64,000 nucleotides of DNA from Eutreptiella sp. 'Long Island Sound 2002'. Its lineage: Eukaryota; Protista; Euglenida. The notes beneath the pieces are model-generated. The model had not been told where the DNA came from. It did no database searches and saw only the letters and a program-made list of their open reading frames with translations. Location of the stretch: the NCBI GenBank assembly GCA_964036045.1, contig OZ038378.1, positions 37,944,001-38,008,000 of the forward strand, given 5' to 3'. The position numbers and the translations under genes were made by a program. Positions 6,598-38,500 of the stretch are shown here, piece after piece (position 1 is the first letter of the stretch; each line of letters begins with the position of its first letter).

Positions 6598-7371
6598 CCG
6601 CAGCAGCAGCCCTCGAAAGCAACTCCTTTGGGGAACAAACGATTGCAGTGATTTGAGAATAACTGCTACGATGAAACATTGGTGACAATGGAATCACCGT
6701 CATGTGAGCAGTTGACTTGAATTTTAATTTATGTTTGACTTTGTTTGATTCGTTGTTCACACTCACCATTTCTTTGTGATGGCACATTGAACTGCCTTTT
6801 TTGAGCAACATTTGGATGTTTCTGTGATGTATGTTTGTGTATGGATTGATTATAACCACTTCCTTATGGTTGCACTCGTATTTTTCTGATGTTATATGTC
6901 AATTTGATTGTGCGGCAAGGAGGCAATGGACAGACAGAATTTTGTACCTCATTCTCTCGGATTTTGCCAAATGTGGCGAAATTTTGCGTCTCATTGCAAT
7001 TCCCTGGAAAATCGGGTCTCTTTCACCATGCACCACTGCACTATTTCGCGGAGTGTCCCTTGGAGACCTACGTTAAAGCCACTATGTTGACATTTCAATT
7101 TTAATTTTTGAAAGGCGTTAAATGTCAAACCGGTTTATTTTGACACGTTAAACAAGAAAACGTAGAAATTTCTAGATTTTAAACTATTTGCAATGTCAAT
7201 TGCGTGCGTATGCTAGGGTCTCAAGGGGGTTTCATGTGGTAGAATCTTGAACAATCGGTTTGTAGAGTTGTTGGATTGCCTAAGAGTTGGGGGTCCAACC
7301 CCTAGTCTCTTTTTTTGGGGTCCACGTGCAACCCCACTCTACACCCCCTTTTCTCTTGTTTGGCACTTGTT

Positions 7372-10300
7372 ATGCCTTTCTGTCGGGACACCCCTAGTGA
7401 CCGAAATTCAACCCAAGAGAATTATTATCTGGGCAAAAATTGACACGTTAATCTGAAGTTTGCATTTTTTTAAGGGGGGTTAGGGGGTTTGCCGTGAAAA
7501 TTCTGACCCCCATGTGTTGCCTTACGGGCTTGGGTAACGTTTTGCCCCGGGGGTTGGTGGGGGGTCCTACCCATGTGGTTGTTTCAAAATGTTAAAATGG
7601 CTCTTGGCTGTAATTTTTGTTTTTAATTTTTGCATTAATATTTGAAAAGGTGCCCTTCTCTACCCCGCTGGGGTAGGGGACGTGGGTGACTGTCCCGACG
7701 ATCGCATCGCCGGGACGGCCGTCCTTCGTCTCGGCCGTTGCACCCTTGGGGGTGTCGGCCTTGGTTGGTTGGGGGGGGGGGGGGGGTTGGCGGTGGCGGT
7801 CTTGGGGGCGTTGGTGGGTTTGGGGGCGGCGACGGCCTTCGTAGGCCGTGCGGTGGTGGTGGTGGTGGGGGGGGTTTGGGCTTTTTGCCGCGGGGGATCG
7901 CGTTGTCGCTCTCCGAGCCGAACTCTAAGGCGAACCGTTCTTTCGAACGTTTGTTTGAGGGGGGTTGGGGGGGGGGGTTGGTTTAGGCGCGGTGGTGGTG
8001 GACACCCCCCCCTCCCCTTCCTCGTCGCTCACCCCACCCCCTCCAATGCTCCCCCACAACCCATCATCCTCCCTCCCCGCATACCCCACCTCTTGCATCT
8101 GAGCCCACTCGCTGGGCCGAAAGTGACGCGACGTCACCCAAACGCCGCTCACCACACGCGAGGTCTCCCAGTCATGGACACCGCGCAAGAGAGCAAGGCC
8201 CAAGGGTGGGTCTCGGGCCACGATGTTGGTGGAGGGACCCCAGGGGTACTTCTTGGGATCGCTCAACGTCTCCCCAAGGCACCCGGATGGGCCTGGCATG
8301 CGTCGCGCTGACCATGACGTCTATTACCTACAGACATAAAAATAACAACAACAGAAGTGTGAATTAATTTTTCCAGCGCCTCTTCATTTTTTCGACATTA
8401 ATATTAACCTTGAACTTCTAATAATTCGACCGGCGGTTCAAAAATGAAATATTAATTTCGAGAAAATAATGCTAGCGACCTAAAAATTAAGCGACACAAA
8501 CAAGCACCATACCTCAAACGTAGCATTGGTGCTTGCTGCTTGTACTGCCCCCATGGCATCCCGCAAGTGAGACGCTGCGGTACGGGCCTCAATGGGGGCT
8601 CCCACGCTGACGGTTTGGGCCGATTGTGCCGCCGGCTTGGCCACGTTCGCGGCCACCGAGGCCGCCTTCACCGTGCGCGAGTTGGGGATGAGGCCCTCGT
8701 ACGAGCGCTGGCACCCTGCATCATAAATGGGTCGGGGCAGGGCCAGGACAGTGCCCCAGTCGACCCCGAACACGATGGCTTTGCCTTGCTGCCACTGCTT
8801 GACCCAGCCCAGCTGGGTCTAGTGCTGTAGCAGCACCTGGTAGTGCGGCGTCCCGAAACGCACGGCGCGGGGGTCAAACAACCAATTCAGTGCGGGCAAA
8901 CTGCCCACACTCGTGGTCTGAAGCAGGGGGGCAGGGGGGCAGCAAGGAGGGGTTTCCAGACCCCCCCCCCCTGGAGGCATCTGGTGACCAACTCCTTCCA
9001 CGTGTCGGTGAATGCATCCCTACCGGGGATGGGCTTGGGGAACAGGAGGCCCGTTGCGGCCGTGTAGGCCAACCCCTGGCGGCTCATATACTCCATCATG
9101 TGCCGGAAGCCAAGCTTGGGGAAGTTCAAGTCCATGAGGAGGCCGATGAGGTCCGGGGCCGGGAAGGGGTGGGAAGCATATTGCTTCACCGCCTCCTTTT
9201 GCTTGTCGCGAATAAGGGACCGGTGGCCAACGTCCGTGGCCTCCGACCATCGGGCCCGGGCCAAGGGAGATGAAGCCACCCACTCACCAAGGAGTTGGGA
9301 GACCAAAGGGTCCCGCAAACTCTTGGCCCCAGCCAAACGCACGAGCATAATGTTACGCTCGCTAAGGGTGTCCCGAGAGAAAGGCATAGAGAGAGAAAGG
9401 CAAGAGCTGTGCAAAGGAACATGGTGGTGTGGAGTGGGGGGGAATGCGGGCAACCGGAGGGGGGGGTGTCCAAGACACCCACCAACACAACATTGGAACA
9501 GCTCTACTATACCGTTGTGCAACAACATACCACGTAACACCCCGTATTGGTCGTCATATGTGCATGGAAAAATGAGTACAAACAACCCAATCAAAAAAAT
9601 TTAACGTTAACCTCGTAATACTTGCGAGATTAATATATTAACCGGTTCATATGTTAAAAATTAAAACTAACCATATTGACTTTAATTTCGGCCACTAGGG
9701 ACCATTCTCGACCTTAGAATGACGCTTGTGCGTTTGAGTGGAGCCAAGAGTTTGCGGGACCCTTTGGTCTCACCAAGGAGCCAAGGGCCGATGGCCGGAA
9801 GACACGGACGTTGGCTACCACTCCCTTATTCGTACTAAGCAAGTGGAGGCCGTGAAGCGATACGCCTCCTTCCTTTTTCTTGCGCCCGAGTTTATTGGGC
9901 CACTCATGGACCTCAATGTCACACGAACGGGGTTCCGCCACCTCTCGGAGTTCATGACCCGGTGAGGGAGTGATGAAACGGCCGCTAAGGGCCACACTTT
10001 CCCGCGACCCATCGCAACACGGCAAGCCTTCTTGGGAAGGGGGAGGACATGGCGAAGCCGATAGAGTTGCGGCCCCCCGTGACCTTGGACGACCAGCCCA
10101 CTAGCCGCATTTGGCACATGCACTCACGGACCCGCTACATTCAATCGCGTGCACCACTAGTGGACACCATTGATTGGGGCCGGCCCCTTACCTTTATTGT
10201 GCGCGGGGATAAGTACCCATGCACCGGTGGGAGTTGGACCCAATTGTCCATTGGGCTCCTCGGCCACGATAAACGGGGCCGCACACGCGCCTATTTGTGG

Positions 10301-12346
10301 GTCATTGGGATGGCCGTGTGCGGCGACAAAGACATGGCCGCTTTAGCCACTATTTGGGCCGAGAACCCTCAGGTACTAGGTGCTTTTTTGTTGCATTGAA
10401 TTTGGGCTCCTTTCGTTTCAAAGTTCCTCATTTAAAAATGAAAAATCGCTTAAGATTTCAATTGAACAAAATTTGCAGCTAAAATTTCAGCGAAAAAGGT
10501 TCTGCCCGGATATCAATGCACGCAGCTTTTTGTAGGTTTGGCGACGAGTGCAAAAGTGTTTGTTGGGCAGCCCGTTGGGTGCCGGCTGCGGTGGTCCTTG
10601 GGGCTGACCAGCCGTTTGTTTGCCGCCTCATTGGGCTGTCCACGTCGCCCCAAGTGGGGTCTATTTAGAATATTGGGGTGTGGGACAAGGCGACGGCGAC
10701 GTGGTTTCGGGTGCACGTGCGCCAAACTTTGTACAACGAGGTGGCCGCCCGTCACCAATATCACGTTGCGGGTCGGAGCTTCGATAATGGGGGCCGCAGA
10801 GTAACTTCACATCGTGGCTGACGGGTGTTGGGTTTTCCTATGCATCTTGGATTGTTGCATGGACATTGGCTGCTTTCAGGTTGCTTTTGTCGAGGTGCAC
10901 TTTGAGGCACTCCCCAAGGAGGATGCCGAGGCCGGGCAACGGTTGTTGTACCTGGCATGCACGGGGGTAAACCCGGGTGACTCTAGCGCACCGGACGGGG
11001 AGGAGTACAGGGCCCTCTCCTTGCGTGGGAGGAGATGGGCCCACTATTGGCCTATGCCACAGAGGACCCCGAATGGCAAGCCATTGTTGCCATGAGGGAT
11101 CGACTTCGTGATTTGTACCTCGATAGGCCCCCTCTCATGGACCCGGGGGCGTCTCTTGTCACGCCGGACTACTGCGCATGTTGCTGCAAGGCCGCCTGCC
11201 AGTCCACCTCCCTCTTGTACCTGGAGGAGGATGTGACCACGGCGGTGTCCAATGCGCCACGTTTTGGTGGTGGGCTTGGGAGCGGTGTGTGCGTATGTGG
11301 TAGAAAGTCTAAACGCCATCCTGAAACTGGCCTACAAAGATCACACGGCCCGCGGGGGGGGGGGGATGCCGGGGGCGACATCCCAGAAAGGGAGGCGGAG
11401 GTCGTTTTGCAAGTATGGGAGCAGTGGTTTTTGAAGTTTGATCTCCCCCTTAGGACCTTAGGAACCCCCATGTGGCCCCATGTACAATGGCCACGCTCAT
11501 GTCCACGCACAGCCCCCCACCCTTTCCCTTGCACACTCAGCTCCCCTATCCACGGACTCCGCCACGATGGAGGCGTTGATGCAAAGAATGATGCAAAAAA
11601 TGACCGACAAAGTGGTATGTGCTTGTGTGTGTGTTTCTGCTTGCCTCGCCACCAAATTTTTTGCCCGCATTTCTCGTTTAAGTTTGAATAGGCGCGTCGC
11701 TGTTTTTGATTTTATTTTAACGCTGGCGGTCGTTCCACATTTAGAATTTAGACGAAAAATGAAGCATTGAAAATTCAACCAAAGATTTTAACCCCAGCCC
11801 AACATTTCCATCTGTTTTCCTCCAGAGATCGCCAAGGTGGAGGACCGTCTGCAGCAGGTTGGAGCACCCCCTGCGGGAGATAATCCAGCTTGAGCTCCTC
11901 TAGCAACTCCTTCAGCAGTTGCAGCCGCTAGCAGTTCCCCACCCCCGGAGCGGGGGGGGGGGGGGGGCACCGTCCGTCGCCGCCTTCTCTGAGAATCACC
12001 TCAAAGAGAAGAAGGATCGGTGACGGAAGAGGGGGGGCGCAAGGAAAGGGAGGAGAGAAGGAGGGCACAGAAGGAGAGGAGGGCGAGCCAAGGACATGGG
12101 GCGGGGGTAGAGGTGAAGGGGGAAGAGTGGGAGGTGGAAGTGCCAGAGGGTGGGGACGGGGAGGGGGATGAGGATGGGGATGAGGTCTTGGAACACGCCC
12201 CCTCCCCCCCCCACAACCCCCTGCTTTACCCCTCCCCGAGTGGCTCCAAAAGGCCCATGGGAAAGATTCAAGGGTGTGCTATAAGGCAGCCGCTGCCCCC
12301 TGGTCTACCCAGGTCCTTGAACAGTGCTGTGCGCCAGACGTGCTAA
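7372..12346 (+). pseudogene. RAG1/Transib-like DDE transposase, interrupted by two insertions, frameshifts and stops
   Basis: The ATG at 7372 reads through in frame once 7392-9702 is removed. Motifs appear in RAG1 order: TFIVRGD (D at 10208), IGMAVCGDKDMAALATIW (10325), VVLGADQPFVCRLIGL (D at 10606), ILDC-(L)H (~10847), WPHVQW..(A)H (11473 and 12255), PWSTQVLEQ (E at 12319). A GT-AG intron lies at 10373-10534. Confidence 0.7.
7392..9700 (-). mobile_element. Nested 2309-bp non-autonomous relative inserted antisense into the host transposon; CCCTAGTG TIRs, 2-bp TSD 'AC'
   Basis: TIRs CCCTAGTGACCGAAATT and rc CCCTAGTGGCCGAAATT match at 16/17. AC lies at 7390-91 and 9701-02. Minus-strand peptides MPFSRDTLSERNIMLVRLAGAKSLRDP..., DPRAVRFGTPHY... 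and RGVHDWETSRV... are paralogous to plus-strand host peptides at 9703-9965, 12555-12660 and 13230-13380. Confidence 0.92.
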
Positions 12347-12481
12347 TTTTTTCCCACCCCAGCAAGGGTCACTACATGTGCGGGTGCACGACTTTTGTAG
12401 TGCCTCATTAGGAAAAATGGGGAGGGCAAGGGGGAGTGGCGAAAAGATTGCACCAACGGGGGCGCTAGGTACAGGCAACGG

Positions 12482-14099
12482 GTGCCAATTGGTCCCATGT
12501 GCCCGCGGGGGGAGAGGGTCACCTCGGAGGCCTTGGGGGCCCTTAACCTGATGAGTGACCCCCGGGGGGTAAGGTTTGGCACCGGCCACTACGTGGTGTG
12601 CCTGCACCACTGGGTGGCCCTTGGCTGGTGCCAGCAGTTGCGGCAAGGCAAATCGGTGCAGTTTGTATTGGCCTGGCTTGCCCTGCTGACCCTGCCCCCC
12701 CTACGATCCCATGGCCTAGCACACCTACGAGGGGCTGGTGCCTAGCTCCCGGACCACCCGCGGGCTGGCCGCCGTCAATTGGGTGGCGGCCCCTGTGGCC
12801 CCCACCAGCGCCGCCGCCACCGCCAACGACCCCTAGCAGGCCCCCACCGCGGCCTCCAACTTTCGGCTGGCGATGGGGGTCCTGCATGCCCAAGGGAGGG
12901 CAAGATTTCAAAAGGTATGTGTGTATGTGCGTGTGCTTGCGTGTGTCTAGTTTTTCGGACGCTTCGTTTAACACTTTTGGTTTGCTTTTTAAATTTCGAT
13001 CGGCGCTGCAAAATTTGGAAATTAACATTCTAAACTGAATGAAAAAATTTAAACTAAGTCGTCCAAAAACTTTAGGTTCTCTCCCACACCACGGCCTCGA
13101 CCTTCTTTGTTGCAGGTCTAGGATGTCGTGGTGTGTGGGTACGATATTCGCCCCATCCGTGTTGTGTGGAGCAACCAAGATGGGGAGGGGAACGTTGGGT
13201 TGAGGGGCTTGCACAAGGTCCTCACCCAGGACGCCGCGCTTTGGTTGGTGATGCTCAGCGGCCTGAAGGATTGGGAATATGGCCCCATGTGCTCCGAGTT
13301 GTGGGGCCCATTGCAGCCCTACAAGCCAAGTCAATGGGCACACTTGGCGGAGGTGGGGTGGTCGGGATGTGAGGATGGGGGTTCTGGCGGGAGATGGGAG
13401 GTGGGGAGGCAAAGGAGGTTAAGGAGGAAAGGGACCGGGCAAGCACCACCACCAACACCACCCCCCCTCCAAGCCCGACCCCCCCTTCCCCAAGAGACGT
13501 AAGGGTGGCAAAGCCACCACCGGGACAACCGGTAAGAAGAGGAAGCGGTTCGAGTCGGACTCGGTTGCCGAGTCCGATCACCCCACCTATTCCTCTTTGC
13601 CCTCCTCCCATGAGGACCCCCCCCAAAAAAAAAAGAACCCCCCCCCCAAAGACCAAGGCCGTTCCCGCCCCGAAAGAGAAGGGGGGGAGAAGAAGGAGGA
13701 GGGGGTTGGGAAAGAAGCGGGGGGGGGGAGAAGGAGGGGGGGGGGGGGGGGGGCAACGATCCTCTTGTGGCGACCACCGCCCATGTCCCAAACGGGGGCG
13801 GGGTAGAGGTTGGCACCGTCACGGGTGCCCACACCCGCAAGAGCGGGGTTGTATGGGTGAGATACACAAACAACCCCAAGGTCTATGAGGTGGAGCGCCC
13901 CCTCATCTTCGGCACGGCCGAAGCCGCGGACGCGCACCTCCAAAAGGTGCGCAAAGGCAAGACCTCCCCTCAACGAAGCCGGCTAACCCCCCGACTAACC
14001 TCCAAGAAAACTGTCAACCCAACCAAAATACCCTTACTAACCGCAACCCAAGGTACCCTGGCGCTATGGGACCCGGAAACGGGCTCCCGAGAGGTTTAA
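12482..14099 (+). pseudogene. C-terminal or accessory coding segments of the host transposon (unknown domain plus a Tudor/SH3-like beta module)
   Basis: Peptides SDPRGVRFGTGHYVVCLHHW, TQDAALWLVMLSGLKDWEYG...PSQWAHLAEVGW and VGTVTGAHTRKSGVVWVRYTNNPKVYEVERPLIFGTAEAADAHL. The first two, plus the start of the third, have diverged paralogues in the nested copy. A GT-AG intron lies at 12915-13115. Confidence 0.6.
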
Positions 14100-15352
14100 C
14101 ACATGAACAATGGCCCGGATGGCCAAGGGCATTAGCCGCAAAGGCTAAGGGGTAGGTTCTATGTGTTTTTGTGCTTGTGTAGGGAGATTTCATTTTTGGA
14201 AAGATGGTTCAAAATTTTCTTGGTTTAATTTTTAATCTGGATGACACATACTATTTAAAATCTGCAAACTTGAAACCAAAAATTAATCTCAAATGTTAAA
14301 GCCGAGGGCCATGGTAATATTTTTACACATCAACACAGATGGACCCCCCCGTACGAACCCATGTGGTCAAATGGAACACACAAGGCACCCAATGGGGGTG
14401 ACAATTTTCTGAAGTGACGCCCCTAACCCCCCGCCAAAAGCGGAAAGTTTGGTTTAATCAATTCAATTTTGGCCGAAGATTAAAAAATATTGGATTTAAT
14501 TTGGGTCTCTAGGGTCACCTATACGCCACGGAAACCCTTTAATGGACAATGCCATTTGTCCTTCAGTGCAATTTCTTTGAATTCCGATGCTTGTTTTGGA
14601 TGCTTTACAACTGTGCTCAATTGCAGGAAAAAAGGGCAAAGTGGACGAAAAGGGGCATGATTTCAGTTGAAGACCTGACTCGTTGTGCGCTGTGTGCCAC
14701 GGGGGGTTAGTAATTCGCCTTTTTTTTTACGCCATCAATGGCCTTCATTTCGTTGACCCCCCCCCCCCCGGGTAATTAAGGCCTCCTAAGATATTGGCAA
14801 CCAGAACGCTCTTGAGACCGTTCTTGTTCCAAAATTCCTCTACTACTCGCATATTTTACTAAGTTTGTTGAGTTGCCTCCTTTACTACCCCGCAATGCTT
14901 GAATTTCATTTCTGTGTACACGTTGGTTATTCATTCCATGATTTATCGGGTTTGTGTTCAAGAACCCTTTGTAGACCGTTCTTTCAACTAACATCCATTT
15001 CAAACACCCCCATGCAATGGTTCTACACTGTTCCGTTTGCTCGTGTTGTTTCGTTTGTTGTTGAGTGTGGTTAACAGCTGCAAGCACCCATTATTTCAAC
15101 AGTGTGAACACCTTCGCCAATGTCGTGTTGTTGCTGTCCACTGAGGGATACTTCAATTGAGATAGACAACGTTGGGTTTTAGCTTGCTGCTTGGCATCTT
15201 GGTCATTGATTCCTAGGATGCTGCGTCACCTCAACTACGACAAGGTATGGTGCTTGTCCGCACCGAATATCATTATGAATACCCTTCAAAACTGGAACAT
15301 TGGTCGAGAACGGTCTGCAGAGCGTTCCTTATTGGAAGCTCCTCAATAATGG

Positions 15353-29900: not shown

Positions 29901-31304
29901 GGTAACAGGGTGGGGTGGTCACTAAACTTCAACGGCTCTATCTGACCACCCGACCAAAGGCATGTGCGTTATTTTGGTCTAATGTAAAATGTGCTATGCA
30001 ATGGTGGGTTTTAGATGTTTTTATGGCGAACGGCAAAGTGCGGTTTTCCAAAGGTCCATTCTTGGACCACAATGTAAAATGCAATCTGCGGCCCTAGACA
30101 TACGAAATACACCCCTAAAAACGCTATTTTCAAAAAACGTTTTGCAAACCAATATTTTAGCAAAACTTCCACGGCAATTTTTTTTTGGGTTGTACGATGA
30201 ATCATCGCACACACCACGACATATGCCAATCCTCGTTGATAATAGTACACGGCAATGTGCGTACACTGCTGGGCAATGTTGTCTGCCGGAATGGTTGTTT
30301 CGTGTAGTTCATGGTAATACCACTTGTCATTCAATAATTGTATCTACAACCATATTTTGTCCTCTTGTGAATTGTTTGGCTCAGAGTGTTGTTGACGCCA
30401 TGGATGCAAAACCTTTCCGCCAATTCCTCGGCAACACCAAGGAGTTTACCAACGCCATTGAGTTATCTAATGTTGCAGCTTTTTCTCGGCCAACTCAAGA
30501 CTTTAGCTTTTTCTACATGGGCCTATGCCACCACCTTCATTCAAGGTGTACCATTGCCCATTTTCATCCTCAACATGCTAAGCTGCAAGCTTGCACCACC
30601 CCTTGAAAATAAGGCACCGTTTTTTTGACCCAGGCATACAATGTGTATTGGCTCCCCCATAGCAGGTGGTAGGTTTCTTCTTAGAACAATGGCCGGTCCT
30701 AGCCAATGTTCATGCAACGGTCCCAATGTTGCCAACCCTGCTTATGCAATTGCAGCTTCTTGTATGCCGTGGAAATGTATCAATTTCTGTTGTGGCGGGA
30801 CATTTTTTACCACCGCCGTCTTGTACCACATGTCAGAGGCAAAACAAAGTACTCAAGAGTACGGTGTTTGCTGTACATCAATTTCCGGGATTTCCGTGGA
30901 GCTCCGCCGGCACCGTACTCGCCGTGTTTAGCGAGTAGTATAGGGGCCCCTTACGCGGGTGCCCCAGGCATCTGTGCGCCACACACTCCGCAGGGTCTTT
31001 GAATTTCGCCACCGCAGTTTGGGCGATGGCTATACACGGCCACGGCGGCAGCACCGCGGTGACCGTCAGCAGAGGGGCCGGCAATGCCTGGGCCCCTTGC
31101 CAGTACGCGTCCGCCAGTTTTTCGGACAGCCATACAATGGTGGGTGCCCACACCCCCGCGCTCCGCGGCTGGTGCACGGACGCATGTTGGTGGCGGTCCC
31201 ATAGTTGGGTGTGCAGGGGCGTGTTGACCGGTACTTGGACACCCAGAAGCTTGGGGGTACCACCCTGACATCCTAAGGTGTAGGCCTGCACCCGAGATAG
31301 GCAG

Positions 31305-34300
31305 TTTCACTGGTGCAGAAAAATTACCACAAACCCCCAATAGTTCAATAGATTTCCTGGAGACAATAGTTTTTGACCACTACTGATTTTTCAAATCCAT
31401 TTTTCAGGCCCCAACGGGCCAAGGTTTCACTGTAAACACTGAAACTCGAGGTGAAAGGCCATATTATATGACACTTTGGGCCGTCTCCAACCCCACCCAC
31501 CTGTCTACAACCCCCCCCCCCCCCCTCTGGGTGCTTGTGGTGGTTCATTTGGGTGTGGTGTAGTATGCACGGACCCAAGTGAGGTTAACAATGCAAGGTA
31601 GTTTCACTGTGAACAGTGAAACTACGTGTCGTGCAAGGTAGTTTCACTGTCAATAGTGAAACTACTTTGCACTAGAACAATTGTGTTGATACCTCTGGAG
31701 TACTTGGAGTACTTGTCTTACTACCCGGGCTAGGAGTCAGGTGTTTCACCACTTGGTCACCAATATACTACCAAACATGTCTAAAAACTACCAGTTTGGT
31801 AGTGCTAGATGAGTACCCTCTTCTCAACGGGGCTCTTGCCATGCCTATTGGGTGACTAGGTGGTGGTGCGGTATGCCACCTGGTGGCTAGGTGGGGGACG
31901 TAGCGGGATTTGCACCGAGCCCCCACTGCCATGAGACGAGGTGGCTATCTACTTGACGACACGACGCTCCGGGGATATTTCCGGTTCCGTTTTTTACAGC
32001 CTTTTTCAAAAACAATATTTCTTTTTACTCGTTTTTCCTGCTTATCCATTAACACCACAATATGGGAAGCATTTTCACTTTTAACAGTGCAATCGTTTTG
32101 AGGCCTCTTACTCACTTACTTTGTCATCTCATCCACTCAGGCCACATTATCACACGTAGTTTCGCTGTCAACATCGAAACTACTTCTGGTCATCAAGTAC
32201 ATATGGTAAGTTGCTACCGCTATGTGCCCTTGTGCTTCTTTATGGTTGTGCCGTGGTGGGGGGACAACGAGGTGCCACATGAGGATGTTATTGCAGTTGT
32301 GCCCCCCCATTGTGCCAACATTCCATGTGTTGATCTCCTGCCTTTTAGGTTGTTGGCTTGCACAATACCGAAGCACTAAGACTTTTCTAGTCAACAGTGA
32401 AACCAACTGCCACCACTCCCTGTTAGTAGCAGGTGGCATATTGCACCCTGTGCACAAGTTGCCCTATTCTGCCTGCTGACACCTATCCACGCTTGATTTT
32501 CCATGTCAGCAGTGAAACCACGGGTTGCTGTCTGCTTGTCACATGTGAATGTAATCTGCCTGTACTCCCTCAGAGGGCACAATGACTGACAATAGTGCCT
32601 CCCCATTCAGCCTACAAGACATTTGCTCGGGGTTGTATGACGTTGTGGATCCGGGTGAGCTATATCAAGATGGGGACTCAATGGTGGAACGTGTTTGGGA
32701 GGAGGACCAGCTTTGCTTGTGGAGGCGGCTCGGGAGTTGCATTTGAATCCTCGAACAAGACGAAGTATTGCAGATGTGAAGCAGGACTAGCCGAGTCGTG
32801 GGTCCAAGCAATGGCTTTTGCGCTCTCTGCCTGCTGTGTTCAAGCTCTTCCGCTGCATGCTGGTACTTGCAAAGCCGATGATAGTGGCAAAAACGGTCCC
32901 CAATGCAAAGGCTTTGACAACACTAACCAAGGAACAACGGCTTGAGTTGCGGGGAAGTGGTTTTGTACTCTTGCGAGAACCACCATTGGCCAACCGGGTT
33001 GCCTTTGCAAAAGAGAGGATCCGCCAAGAAATGACACAAGGATTATGTGACATGGGCACACCAATTTTGCAAGCGCCTCCATTTTATAGCAGCCTGCGGG
33101 GAGCAAGGAGGTGCCAGAAGTGGGAGAAAAGCAGCCCTAAACAGTACGAAATTGCATGTCCCAGGCACCTCTTCTGATGGGGTTTCACTGTGGACAGTGA
33201 AAGTGTGCTGCAGGCGATTCAATTGGAAGGACCATTTGCCTTTGGTTGTCACTGCAGCATTAAGTTTAGTATTTCACTATCACGCAAGATACCGGCTTTA
33301 CCTTATGTTGGCTGTTTTCAATTTGCTGAATATTTTGTTGAACATAGGACACAAGGCAACTAGCAGTTGTTAAAACTAACATTGTGTACACTGGTGCTGC
33401 ATCATAATGCTTCCTGCTCCTCATCTACTTGTAGTGGTTCCTTCTGCCAAGGGATGCACAATAAAGACGGAAATTGATTCTTTGTGACCCAACCGTACCA
33501 TGAATCATATCATGCTAGCCCTTTTTGAATGTGCGGTACATGGACGGACACCCACACAACGGGCAGGAGGAATCAACGAGAATGGTGTGAAGGCTGATGA
33601 TGAACACAGGCAAGGAAGCCAGCATCAAAAGCTCCTTGACACCATGCTCCTTGGTACCAGCATTCCAAAAAACTACAGTCTCCGAGGAGGTTTCACTGTG
33701 GACGGTGAAACTGTCTGCCCGGAAGCTACCTTATCCCGTGCCGTTGATTCTGTGGTTCATGTGCCCCCAACTGTCCTTCAACTTGCCTTCAATGCCAATA
33801 GTGTTGATCCAAAGCCAGCTCTCGCGAAGCCCACAAGGGAAAAGAAGCGGAAGGCCAAGCCCCTTGCCAAGGGAGGTGCCAAGCGGCCGACCGAGCAAAC
33901 CACCCTCACCCTCACCCAGATGGACCTAGAGAAAACCGTGGATTTGCACAACATTGACAAGGGCCAGTAGCAAGCAGTTGCAGCGCAGATTAAGGACGCG
34001 AACAGCGTGGGATGCGGTGGACGAGGATCCCCCTGGCTGAAGCGGAAACCCAAAGTCCCTGCCGTGGCCATCCCCAGTGTGGCTCAGCTTAAGCAAGCTT
34101 CCCGGAAGACCCGCAGTGCAAAGGAGTAGGCTGAATTGGAGTACCTGTTAGTTGTGCTTTTTTGAGAACTGCTTCTGGTTGTCCTGTTGCGGCCCTAACA
34201 ACGTCTGTTGGTTTGCTGGGTTATCACATTGTACTTTCCCTGTCAACTATGAAACACACTGCCATAATGACACATGTGCCTGAAATGCCTGAAACTGTTG

Positions 34301-34790
34301 TTAGGTTTTTTCCCCTCACTGCACTGCTCTGTGATGACCTAGTGCACAGTTTGGTCCGGAAGTACAACATGTGCTTTTGTTTTTCATTGCACCTCGGAGT
34401 GCAGTATAAAACTCTTTTTCACTGTTAGCAGTGAAAGCACTCTCTCCCTTGCTGATGCCATTTGCTAGTGACAGCCTTTTTCATTGCGGATATGCTTCTA
34501 CACATGCACGTACACTGTGTGCACAAGCGCCCTACCTGTGTTTTGTGTTGCTCCTTTACATACACTCGTTTGTCACAGGGGGAAGTTGTTCGTGGCTGCA
34601 TCTGGTCCACAGCCGCACATGGCATGGAATGGAGAGAGGGGGGGGTTCTGGGGATGCAGTCCATTGCACCTCAATGCTTCTATGTCAGTTGGTGTTTCAC
34701 TGTTGACAGTGAAACATTATGAAATATGGCCCCCACGGTGCAGTTTTGGCAAATTGAATTTTTATGTCAGTTTCACTGTTGGCCACGCAG
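31305..34790. repeat. Dispersed hairpin GTTTCACTGT-NN-ACAGTGAAAC: 7 near-complete copies plus several half or degenerate copies
   Basis: Near-complete at 31424, 31598 (13-bp perfect stem), 31638, 33182, 33690, 34417 and 34693. Degenerate or half copies at ~31304, 32071, 32388, 32497 and 34769. Confidence 0.9.
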
Positions 34791-35429
34791 GCCAACAATG
34801 AAATTTTTTGTCCGTTTTCAGGGTCCCCGTCGGTCCGGGATGTTAGGTTCCTACTACCAAGAGAAGGGCCACTAGGAGGCAATACAGCCGGGTATCGCTG
34901 GGCAGCGCATCCGGGGGCTGATAGCACACCTGGAGCTCCGGTGTGCAGTCTTTGGCCACCATGATGTCTTCATGGCAGTCGTCACCTTCATTGCATATCC
35001 CCCGTGGTACACGGTCTCCACGCGGGTGGTCTGGGCCACCCGGCCTATGATGACCGCTTCCACAGGGTACGCGGGCACTGCGCCGAGAACCTAGCCCTAG
35101 GGTATGTGTATTGGGGGGCCCGTGGTTTTTTCCCCACAATTTCAATGTTTTCACTTGAATTTGGAGTCCAAAAAAGTTTCGTTGTAGCAACGTTCTAGCG
35201 ATGTTCTAGCGAGCGCCGCTACAACGTCGCAACAACCTTTGCTAGAACGTCGCTACAACAATATATATGAATGCTCCGCCACTCCTCAAAGAGAAGCCGC
35301 CCTGGCTACCCTGGCCAGCCGTGGCCCATCACAGGGTCGTGATGGTCCACCGGACTCATGTAGCACCGGGTTCGCCACCACCACCCCCCGGTTACCCCGA
35401 TTAGCCCCCCAACCCACCCCATAGGTCAC

Positions 35430-38200
35430 TTGGAAGGTCACTTGGCGGGCCAACGCCGGGTCACTTCATGGTGGGTTAGCCCGATTAGCCCGGTTAGCCC
35501 CATTAGCCCCCTTGCCCATAAGGCCCCCTTTTTGCGACTGGCGAGTCACAGGCTACCCCTCCTGCGTGCTGGGGGGTTGCCGGGGCGCATCCTTGTTCCC
35601 GGCATCCCCTTTCTCACCCCCCGTGTCCCCTTTCTTCACACCCCCCTTGTCGCCCCGCACCCCACCCCCCTTGTCACCCCCCTCCCCCTTGTCATCACCC
35701 TCGTCCCCCTTGTTATTCCGGTCGTCCCCGTCGTCCCCGTCGTCCCGCTCCTCCAAGGCCGCCCGGAGGTGGGCCTCCGCCTCCTCCGGGGTGCGGAAGA
35801 GGAGCTCCCCTGGCACCCGGAAGGTGCCCCCCTCTTTCTCCCGCTTCCTCTTCTTCCCCTTCTTCCCCTTCTCCTCCCTGGTGGACCCCTGCGACACCAC
35901 CCACGAGTCCCCCGGGTCCAACTCCACATCCCAATCGCCCAACACCGTCACTTGGTTGACGCTCCCCCCATTGCCCACCCCTGCCCAAGGGACATACCGG
36001 GTGTCCCCCACACCCGGCACATTCCCATAGGGGTCCCGGCCCCTATCTTGCAAGGTGCTGCTGCTGTTTCTCCGCTTGCCGCTGCTGCTGTACCCTCCCT
36101 CCTCCCCCATCCTCACCAAACCCCTGCGATGCTGGTCCATCCCCCCCCCGCTCTTGCCCGTCTCCCACCTAGCCAACCCGTATAGCACCGAGAGGGCCAA
36201 GTTGGGGTCATTCCCCAACATCCGGCCCAACTCGGTGACCCCCACGAGGTGCGGGCGGCCTCCTGCATCGCGCCACTCCAACCGCACCCCGCGAGGGTCG
36301 GCTCCACACGTCTACAAGCTCACAACCTGAGAAGAGAAACAAGAGGCAGGTGTGTTCTAGCGACGTTCTAGGCAACTGTGTTGGCGTTGTAGCGACGTTC
36401 TAGCGGTGGCGGCCGCGGTTTGGCTAGATCAACATTAGAACGCTTCCCTAGATCAACGCTAGAACGCACTCAGCATACCATGTCTGGCTTATCGTGGCCG
36501 GGGGGGATTGCCTCCAGAGCCTTGGCGAAGGCACCCCAGGAATCAAGGTAATGCGGCTGCGGGGATCCACCAGTTGCAGGGGTTGTGGGGGCCTTGGGCT
36601 TGGGCTTGGGGTGGGAGGCGATGCCGTGCACCAATCTAGCATACGCCCCCCGATTGTCGGCCGATGGGTCGAACCTCCCGATCCCCATGATCTCCAACCA
36701 CGTCGGCGTCCACGTCCACGTCCTCCTAGCACACTCCATACCTCTCAGTCCCATCGCGTGCCAGAAGTGGGCGATGAACCGCCAGTGGCTCGCCCCCTCC
36801 TTTTTGACGTCGGGGGTGAAGACGTTGGGTCGGGCCAACCCAAACATCTTCACCCCCTTTTCGGAGGGGGGGGGGGGCGCTACCCCTCTCTTCCTCCCGG
36901 GCAACTTCGGTTGCCACCACCATGCCCCTGCAACCCCCCCCACCCACAAGGGTTTGTCGTCGTGGACCCACCCCTCGTCCGCCCATACCAGCTCCGCTGC
37001 CTCAAAAATTTGTGATGCACACGGTGAATCAAAAAACGGAGAGTCCAAATCGGACTGTCCGGGGGGACGAGGAGGGGATGGTCGAGGTTTGGGGGGTGGG
37101 GGCCAGCCAAGATAACGGGGTCCCATGGCAGTGCCCGGATGGACCCCGCCTCCATGGCCCCCCCCAAAACCCTAACCCACTGCTTTCCCCCCCACCGCCT
37201 TCTCTTCCGCCACCTTCTCCTCCACCTCCTGCTTGACCCCCTCCTCCACCGTCTCCTCCTCCTCCACCTCCACCACCTCATCTACCACCTCCTTTTTCAC
37301 CTTTGTCCCCTTCGCCACGATCTCCTCCATCCGCCTGACGCTCCTCTTTAGCTAGTGGATGTTGTCTTCCACGTCCCTGACCTTCTGCCTCGCCGTCTCG
37401 AGGAGCGTTGCGGCCCAACCCTCACGCTCCTCCTCCCCCTGGGCGCTCGGCGCGTCCACCTTGGCCTCCTGCGCCACCACCTTGGCCTCCGCCCTGGCCT
37501 TTGCCCCCCTCTGCGCCCCCAGGGAAGCCGATAGAACTTGCACCTCCCCGCGCAGCTGCTCTAGCTCGTACTCCTCGTCATCCTCCACCACCGCCTCCGG
37601 CTTGACCGCCTTCGCCGATTTCGTGGCTGTCAGGGGGTGTGGGGGTGGCAACGGAGGAAGAGGATGTTGGACTTGGGGCTTGGGCTTGGGCTTGGGCTTG
37701 GCCAGGGGTATTGGCTTGGGCTTTGCCTCGCCCTCGGCTGCCAGCTGGCGCATCACCTCGGCCAGCAACTCCGTGGTCTGGCGTAGCTAATGAAAAATCG
37801 CAGCAGCGTTCTAGCAACGCTCTAGGCATTTGTTCAAGCGGCGTTCTAGTGACGTTCTAGCAACCGATCGTGCTGCCTAGATCAACACTAGAACAATTCC
37901 CTAGATCGTCGCTAGAACGCACAATAAAATACCTCTTCCAAGATCTGCTCGATCAAATCCTCCTCGGCGGATATGTTGCTGATGCCGAAGAGTCTGTCCG
38001 AGGGAAGCCTGCATATTCCCCTGGCCCCTCCTCACCTCCATAGCATCCCTGCCCGAGCATCGAACTTGCGACCGGGGCCCCCCGTGCACAACCCACGATA
38101 TGTCGAAGTATGCAAACAGCCATGTCGTGCTTTTAGCTTGCACACCGTCCTCCCTGTGGATGGCCGACCATTTACGCCCTGACACCTCGTCCACCCCCTC
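35430..38200 (-). pseudogene. Antisense multi-exon GC-rich gene or pseudogene nested in the PPR-like gene intron (probably element-borne)
   Basis: Canonical introns at 37787-37932 and 36327-36478. The splice joins ...EEDLIEQILEE|LRQTTELLAEVMRQ in frame. An in-frame TAG sits at 37352. ORFs 36470-37126 and 35553-36287 are protein-like; product unknown. Confidence 0.65.
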
Positions 38201-38274
38201 CACCTACCCCCCCCCCCCCCAAACGTTGTGCTCGTCATGACCATGTTTGCGAGGGCGGTTGATGCTTTCCGATC

Positions 38275-38500
38275 GTGTAGCAGCGAATTGTAATGGGTTG
38301 TGAGCAAGTGGCCACAGGGAGGTAACGAGTTGTAATGGGGTGTGAATGGGTTGTAATGGGGTGGTAATGAGTGGTAAAGGTGTGGCAAGGAGTGGTAACA
38401 CGGTGCTATTGATTTCTAACGGGGTGGTATGGAGTGGTAACGGCATGGTAACAAGTGGTAACGGCGTGGTAACGAGTGATAATAGCGTGTTCATGAGTGG
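38275..38500. repeat. Short second patch of the GGTAAC minisatellite
   Basis: GTAATGGGGTGGTAATGAGTGGTAAAGG...GTGGTAACGGCGTGGTAACGAGTG, in the same orientation as 26840-29900. Confidence 0.85.

Follow-up and report, generated by a model that had tools for sequence, protein, structure and literature searches.

In En/Spm (CACTA) and Ac, a short word is repeated in both orientations beside the terminal inverted repeats (TIRs), serves as a protein-binding site and forms arrays found at the element's ends only. Introners are families of similar short GT-AG introns with inverted repeats and a link to DNA transposons (PMC9860276; PMC12130899), among them the introner elements and the introners resembling MITEs (miniature transposable elements with inverted repeats) of Huff, Zilberman and Roy 2016, as far as PMC11170887 summarizes them. 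The introner itself is the mobile unit, occurs in many unrelated host genes and has its splice sites supplied by TIRs or target site duplications (TSDs). In Hypoxylaceae, similar introns with internal symmetry or hairpins, termed stwintrons and sister introns, have also multiplied in the genome, and are described as nested twin introns at new positions in host genes (PMC8469720, PMC9024468). Euglenids possess nonconventional and 'intermediate' introns with a stem that draws the two intron ends together and a suspected link to transposons (PMC3935182, PMC4770533, PMC12501133); the nonconventional type is non-GT-AG and carries C(A/T/G)G at positions +4 to +6 and, 5-6 nt from the 3' end, the complement of this triplet (PMC12501133). 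Here we describe a repeat from the euglenid Eutreptiella sp. 'Long Island Sound 2002' that shares features with these systems. It lies at positions 35108-38272, on the minus strand, of a 64-kb stretch of contig OZ038378.1 (the window, analyzed at its full length) and is best explained, with a rough probability of 0.68, as a dead and truncated copy of an abundant cut-and-paste transposon whose introns hold arrays of putative protein-docking sites.

The element carries introns that resemble introners in being similar, short and GT-AG-bordered with inverted repeats, but what moves in this case is a 5.35-kb transposon, in whose own genes the introns occupy fixed positions. The introns of Hypoxylaceae, which share internal hairpins and multiplication with those of the element, are set apart by the description given above. 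Host lineage, stems and a suspected link to transposons are shared with the euglenid nonconventional introns, yet the code of the latter, CAG/CTG at +4 to +6 and at -8 to -6, is absent: the three segments identified run from GT to AG, positions +4 to +6 read CTC, TTT and TGC, a pyrimidine tract is present, and the stems consist of extended internal arrays in which one word recurs. As in En/Spm and Ac, a short word is repeated in both orientations beside the TIRs, but in the element described here further arrays are found in every intron found and in a 3' internal hairpin.

The window repeat belongs to an abundant TIR-bounded element with short derivatives. A first look at the 2.28-Gb assembly, in which the window lies on a 201-Mb contig, returned 1009 candidates with intron B as query and 794 with the long second exon of the same gene. 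The best 40 of the 1009 intron B candidates show full-length coverage at 85-90% identity, and the abundance of the element is estimated at about 800-1000 or more copies per 2.28-Gb genome. Four full copies, fetched with long flanks, measure 5316-5368 bp and are bounded by a 27-bp TIR starting CCCTTGGTACAC, their ends reading CCCTTGGTACACGCTAGAAGACCCAAT and its reverse complement. Their TSDs are 2 bp long (AA, TT, CA and AG), and three shorter non-coding elements (1007, 2299 and 2276 bp) possess the same TIR and TSDs of TG, AA and AT, giving a 2-bp TSD in 7 of 7 elements. The element is a cut-and-paste DNA transposon with non-autonomous derivatives. A reading of the 3.2-kb repeat as a helitron, long terminal repeat (LTR) element or other retroelement was dropped, as full copies show TIRs and TSDs. 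GT...AG segments number three in full copies: the transposase gene is split by intron 1, and a second gene (gene 2) by introns A and B. Nested repeats are common around all fetched copies, and the C1 full copy (L063/L064) carries a 6.6-kb insertion at element position ~1786.

The window copy represents the 3' 60% of the 5.35-kb element. It is homologous, through exons and introns alike, to 29 other copies at 70-87% identity. Because other copies extend past both 35108 and 38272, it is truncated at both ends, and its lost 5' and 3' parts were not found elsewhere within the window. An open reading frame (ORF) at 38203-37904 continues the transposase frame known from full copies, and homologous ORF products of other copies align with the last exon of gene 2. 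Stops or frameshifts are present in all copies examined. Premature stops in dead copies are often TAG where relatives have CAG (36312-36314 in the window; loci L077, L082, L083, L084, L085 and L087), which hints at a frequent C-to-T change in a non-CpG context.

Introns A and B and a third fold-back on the 3' side of gene 2 are built of the same 11-bp CGTTCTAGC/GCTAGAACG units. Read 5' to 3', both introns consist of GTAT, GTTCTAG/GATCTAG units, a short loop, CTAGAAC units and a pyrimidine tract plus AG. Intron A starts GTATTTTATTGTGCGTTCTAGCG and ends TTTTTCATTAG, and intron B starts GTATGCTGAGTGCGTTCTAGCG and ends in a pyrimidine tract plus CAG. The 5' arms of A and B are 88% identical over 49 nt, and the inverted-repeat arms span 44 nt with 80% complementarity in A and 26 nt with 81% in B. 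Across the 64-kb window, 7 exact matches to the 9-mer CGTTCTAGC compare with 0.2 expected, and every one of them falls within three clusters (35191-35249, 36396-36466 and 37807-37919). RNA folding energies are -58.5 kcal/mol for A (z -5.2), -45.2 for B (z -2.4) and -47.6 for the third cluster (z -6.8), and all three would form stable folds as RNA or as DNA. An Rfam search gave zero matches at E up to 1. A first-pass annotation of the window had described A and B as paralogous minus-strand GT...AG hairpins whose 3' halves are the reverse complement of a 5' motif and end in a pyrimidine tract plus AG, and had placed a third fold-back of the same motifs at 35179-35260; arm identity, inverted repeats, the 9-mer cluster and folding bear this out. 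Its statement that the flanking exons are unrelated also holds, apart from a low-complexity coding repeat rich in Lys and Pro.

The same annotation took the two introns for members of a mobile or self-copying family of the introner type, and this is where our results depart from it. The motif doublet GCTAGAACGNNGCTAGAAC has 6640 genome matches versus 54 for the control, and a 31-nt signature of the hairpin arm has 735 versus 0. We examined the context of the module at 37 sites on chromosomes C1-C3. All 17 doublet sites belong to copies of this family, to TIR-bounded relatives or to positions at the ends of such elements, while all 20 further sites fetched through the arm signature, which belong to diverged subfamilies, lie at intron site A or B of gene 2. 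None of the 37 sampled sites places the module in any other context, and motif introns in unrelated genes, as expected of a self-copying family, were not encountered among them. Nor do short TSDs supply the splice sites, another expectation raised: no CCCTTGG tip and no 2-bp duplication is present at the borders of module or intron, which read exon|GTAT...AG|exon. Among copies that were picked through the module itself, it is present at site B in 28 of 28 covering copies; at site A the alignment filter retained 16 of the 29 other copies, all with the module, the rest aligning unreliably. With all 37 sites inside one transposon group and the whole 3.2 kb forming one dispersed repeat, the introner interpretation of A and B is largely wrong. 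What survives of it are paralogous, multiplied modules that are very probably introns of one gene; a self-mobile family in unrelated genes does not. The alternative anticipated by the annotation, a motif confined to this element family and created by internal exon-intron duplication, is right as to confinement but not as to origin, since only a hairpin core of ~100 nt is common to A and B. As part of the best explanation, the many genomic 'intron' copies are products of whole-element transposition and not of intron movement.

The organization of the two genes favors splicing of the three segments. Intron 1 occupies element positions 981-1108 (C13 copy) and joins ...TLWKSNWE to VIQEIIDTGL.... 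In full-copy coordinates, the three predicted splice junctions are 980|1109, 2218|2366 and 3673|3821. Upstream of intron A stand a conserved ATG and 13-14 codons, and since the frame of this short exon is not that of the transposase end, we read it as opening a second gene. About 436 codons separate intron B from intron A. In 12 of 13 copies with an intact donor, from diverged subfamilies, the distance from ATG to GT at A is 39 or 42 nt. The exon 1 peptide M(A/S)(S/A)KELIEQ... is conserved despite many nucleotide differences, and the phase-0 frame resumes right after the AG. At the 20 arm-signature sites, the exon upstream of B ends ...FAKALGAISPALD.QGT and the downstream exon starts VVSVQTCGADPRGV. 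Exon 2 of gene 2 shows a weak third-codon-position signal. GT, AG and pyrimidine tracts are kept in the 16-28 copies that cover them, and in a ten-copy subfamily whose intron B is 2 bases longer immediately ahead of the acceptor, the AG adjoining the exon is kept in 9 of 10. Units of 11 nt have been gained or lost inside the segments, and only there does length change by anything other than a multiple of three; the 2-nt and 11-nt changes would break the reading frame if translated. Reading in frame through each segment meets a stop within 3-12 codons of the 5' splice site. The segments thus display the features of conventional spliceosomal introns (GT donor, pyrimidine tract, AG acceptor and a frame kept over the junction), and judging from these features, active copies probably splice the three segments out of RNA.

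The transposase likely adopts a fold related to that of RAG1 and Transib. It is encoded by the 5' 2.2 kb of the element, a part absent from the window copy, and contains the motifs GGD, CILHC and D.VESLNR.LK; both the family alignment and the ORF translations show CILHC and HGHNEH. A HMMER search with the transposase returned 277 relatives, mostly short ORF fragments. Pfam searches with all ORF pieces of the window copy, of one full copy and of ten distant homologues yielded no match of use, and a sequence profile search of the PDB with the transposase alignment gave chance matches only. In contrast to these sequence searches, an AlphaFold model of the C-terminal catalytic half (pLDDT 80.5) retrieved RAG1 chains as all of the top 40 PDB matches in Foldseek (TM 0.52-0.56, E about 3e-3), followed by HzTransib (Helicoverpa). 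The predicted model therefore points to a RAG1/Transib-like assignment that is supported at the level of fold only. The CMCT clade of Kojima, characterized by TSDs of 2-5 bp and termini that are usually CA..TG (PMC12730594), is alike in its RAG1/Transib-like fold, its TIRs and a TSD range that includes 2 bp, but the element has no sequence-level Pfam or PDB match and possesses two genes with hairpin introns.

A distant relative within the window suggests that intron 1 is old. An ORF at 9989-11005, inside this relative, is 36-49% identical to the transposase at the protein level, and a GT...AG segment at 10373-10535 interrupts the relative at the codon homologous to intron 1. Since the position is common to families that are only 36-49% identical, it predates the split of the two families. 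The segment also carries a stem, GTTGCATTGA / TCAATGCA, near both ends, and the frame downstream of it is off by one base.

Arrays of the GTTCTAG word are concentrated in the ends, the introns and the 3' hairpin of the element. The first and last ~100 bp are dense in the word. Of 83 matches to the 9-mer (≤1 mismatch) in the four full copies, 82 fall in the 740 bp that make up the ends, the three introns and the 3' hairpin, and one in the 4528 bp of exons and untranslated DNA. Along the element, neighboring arrays are about 1.2-1.45 kb apart; the fourth, a hairpin, lies about 250 bp (222-286 bp) short of the 3' end. Non-coding derivatives keep this hairpin at the same distance from the end, and the 2.3-kb ones also keep a central hairpin. 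In A and B, four forward units alternate between GTTCTAG and GATCTAG and are followed by a 16-20 nt loop and five CTAGAAC units; at the consensus level the cores of A and B are about 90% alike and the leaders, loops and acceptor tails differ. The unit shared by A and B thus appears to be a ~100-nt module set in different intron frames and not a duplicated intron. Heptamer columns of the introns are the best conserved, with mean pairwise identities of 0.92 and 0.89 versus 0.83-0.85 for the spacers. Between two subfamilies, the loop and 3' arm of A, which lay outside the selection pattern, show 0.84 identity, whereas the flanking exon reaches 0.68-0.69 and exon 1 on its own 0.58, so that the arrays change more slowly than the exons beside them; some exon stretches are of low complexity and fast-evolving. 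Both sets of figures come from copies chosen via the hairpin itself, and repeated units align easily, which raises identity. The number of units varies in one arm only. RNAalifold did not recover the long hairpin from 29 copies of intron B and found zero covariation; the register is blurred because the unit number changes. One-arm variation together with absent covariation is easier to reconcile with arrays of sites than with a single precise RNA helix. Related elements (L035:1400-1700, L058 and L032:2720-2880) contain long internal palindromes that start with a G run, end with a C run and hold motif arrays centrally. These palindromes have no GT...AG borders and may be non-coding counterparts of the intron modules.

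Each intron thus holds an inverted array of the 7-9-bp word (GTTCTAG, extended CGTTCTAGC) that is clustered beside both TIRs. Based on this distribution, we propose that the arrays would be cis-acting docking sites for a DNA-binding protein encoded by the element, either the transposase or the gene 2 product, and would help the element to recognize or assemble its own DNA, having been duplicated from the ends into every untranslated part. Their restriction to introns and untranslated DNA would follow from the word itself, which carries TAG on both strands and so could not be accommodated in a reading frame. Transpososome assembly, titration of transposase and an added action at the RNA level are each possible. 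More specifically, end-recognition sites kept in all introns and the 3' hairpin could constitute a distributed system of self-recognition or assembly, a transposition 'enhancer' or a copy-number sensor; we put this forward tentatively, at somewhat less than even odds. Our searches of the transposon literature returned no description of such an architecture. If the arrays are functional, a cut-and-paste element can carry many protein-docking sites without damage to its genes by storing them in introns, which would be a new architecture among RAG1/Transib-related transposons. The modules bring ready-made splice signals, so fragments of the element could give rise to further hairpin introns in host genes of Euglena, an idea that would open the transposon origin long suspected for euglenid introns to testing. 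The element further provides a concrete and abundant family in which the link of transposons, hairpins and introns in Euglena biology can be studied, and for annotation, about 6600 motif doublets and more than 700 'introner-like' hairpins find their explanation in one transposon group.

Several observations weigh against this account of a transposon with spliced, array-bearing introns. Database proteins derived from these copies, all on Euglena-type contigs, are unspliced ORF calls and not spliced models. The GT-AG introns of E. gracilis have a GTGTG donor and a C-rich tract as consensus (PMC11170887), whereas the element has T-rich tracts and the donors GTACT, GTATT and GTATG. Gene 2 has no Pfam match, and the AlphaFold model of its last exon (pLDDT 51) is unusable for a search. 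The effect of copy selection and repeated units on the conservation figures belongs here as well, as do the CCC..GGG termini of the element, which are unlike the CA..TG of the CMCT clade (PMC12730594). Finally, the end word of the distant relative was sought in its own intron and no clear shared word emerged from this single decayed copy, so that the idea of arrays changing along with the ends is not confirmed in the one distant relative within the window.

Among other explanations, a role at the RNA level, in which the hairpins bring donor and acceptor together for splicing or regulation or yield small RNAs that control the element, is unlikely but accounts for a number of features. The folds of A, B and the third cluster are stable as RNA, the stems begin 9-13 nt after the donor and finish 19-27 nt before the acceptor, and in the distant relative the counterpart of intron 1 likewise has its stem near both ends. 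GATCTAG units are found in the 5' arm only, a strand asymmetry conserved in A and B, and Euglena nonconventional introns use terminal pairing (PMC12501133). However, the same arrays are present outside introns, beside both TIRs, 3' of gene 2 and in the non-coding 1.0-2.3 kb derivatives. The variation of units in one arm leaves no fixed pairing register, in line with the RNAalifold result, and intron 1 folds no better than shuffled sequence (z -0.8).

It is distinctly unlikely that the modules are functionless relics of old nested insertions, in which short derivatives entered the element's own non-coding parts in an introner-like manner. Forward units followed by reverse units do resemble a miniature 5' end joined to a 3' end, short TIR-bounded derivatives exist and nesting is common in this genome. 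In addition, cores that are ~90% alike within differing leaders, loops and tails fit a module that entered pre-existing introns. Against this, neither a CCCTTGG tip nor a 2-bp duplication is seen at the borders of module or intron, and neutral relics would not be expected to be more conserved than the neighboring exons with heptamers as the top columns.

That the segments are not introns at all, but stay in the RNA or separate short ORFs, with GT and AG as chance features of the repeat, is highly unlikely. The stops and frameshifts in all copies examined and donors atypical for E. gracilis would be compatible with it, but frames that stop at GT and resume at AG in phase 0 between subfamilies whose exons are about 58-69% identical, frame-breaking length changes found only inside the segments, and the conserved pyrimidine tract and AG are not. 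Least credible of all are true introners, in which the hairpin segment itself would move and create GT-AG introns in unrelated host genes: more than 700 genomic copies of similar GT-AG segments with internal stems and the proposed MITE origin of euglenid introns (PMC11282704, PMC12501133) speak for them, but all 37 sampled sites belong to the transposon group, either at two recurring gene positions or within non-autonomous relatives, flanks are homologous wherever the module occurs, target duplications are absent from the borders and the position of intron 1 is older than the split of two distant families.

Table 1. Features of the transposon copy and of its distant relative, in window coordinates.
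Feature	Position	Strand	Description
Decayed transposon copy	35108..38272	-	~5.35-kb TIR element without first ~1.87 kb and last ~155 bp; both TIRs gone
Transposase reading frame, 3' end (VEGVDEVSGRKWSAIHRE...)	37975..38272	-	Overlaps start of gene 2 in another frame
Gene 2 exon 1	37933..37974	-	14 codons, ends in phase 0; start ATA here, ATG in other copies
Intron A	37787..37932	-	146 nt, GT...AG; 4 forward and 5 reverse GTTCTAG/CTAGAAC units, 16-nt loop
Gene 2 exon 2	36479..37786	-	One frame, predicted coiled-coil and Lys-Pro-rich product; in-frame stops 37354-37352 and 37174-37172
Intron B	36327..36478	-	152 nt, GT...AG, pyrimidine tract; 4 + 5 unit architecture as in intron A
Gene 2 last exon	35553..36326	-	Premature TAG 36314-36312 (CAG in other copies); natural stop 35555-35553
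Third fold-back	35179..35260	-	3' of gene 2; 222-286 bp from 3' end in full and non-autonomous elements
Distant relative	7058..14514	+	TIR starts CCCTTGGAGACC; TIR tip CCCTTGG as in main element

The transposon copy is bordered by other repeats on both sides. Directly upstream of its truncation point lies a 21-bp tandem repeat with units ending GGTAA (38284-38472), which is present in none of the fetched loci. On the other side, positions 31249-34861 constitute an unrelated dispersed repeat of ~3.6 kb that adjoins the copy and whose other copies are 89-91% identical. A 182-bp piece, corresponding to position 34386/34387, is absent from the window copy of this repeat and present in all its other copies. 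This piece was considered as a hairpin module and rejected; it is not a hairpin, lacks GT...AG ends and is unrelated to the introns.

The spliced-leader (SL) sequence of Euglena gracilis was also used as a query and has 7483 genome matches at ≤2 mismatches versus 0 for the reversed control, scattered along the chromosomes. Two copies were fetched, one followed by the donor GTATA and the other by GATTA; GTATA is the published donor of the E. gracilis SL RNA (PMC11170887). The copy with GTATA has the surroundings of an SL-RNA gene, and together with the number of matches it was read as pointing to a Euglena-type genome, that of E. gracilis or a near relative. Many of the spliced-leader copies may represent dead SL-RNA genes or retrocopies.

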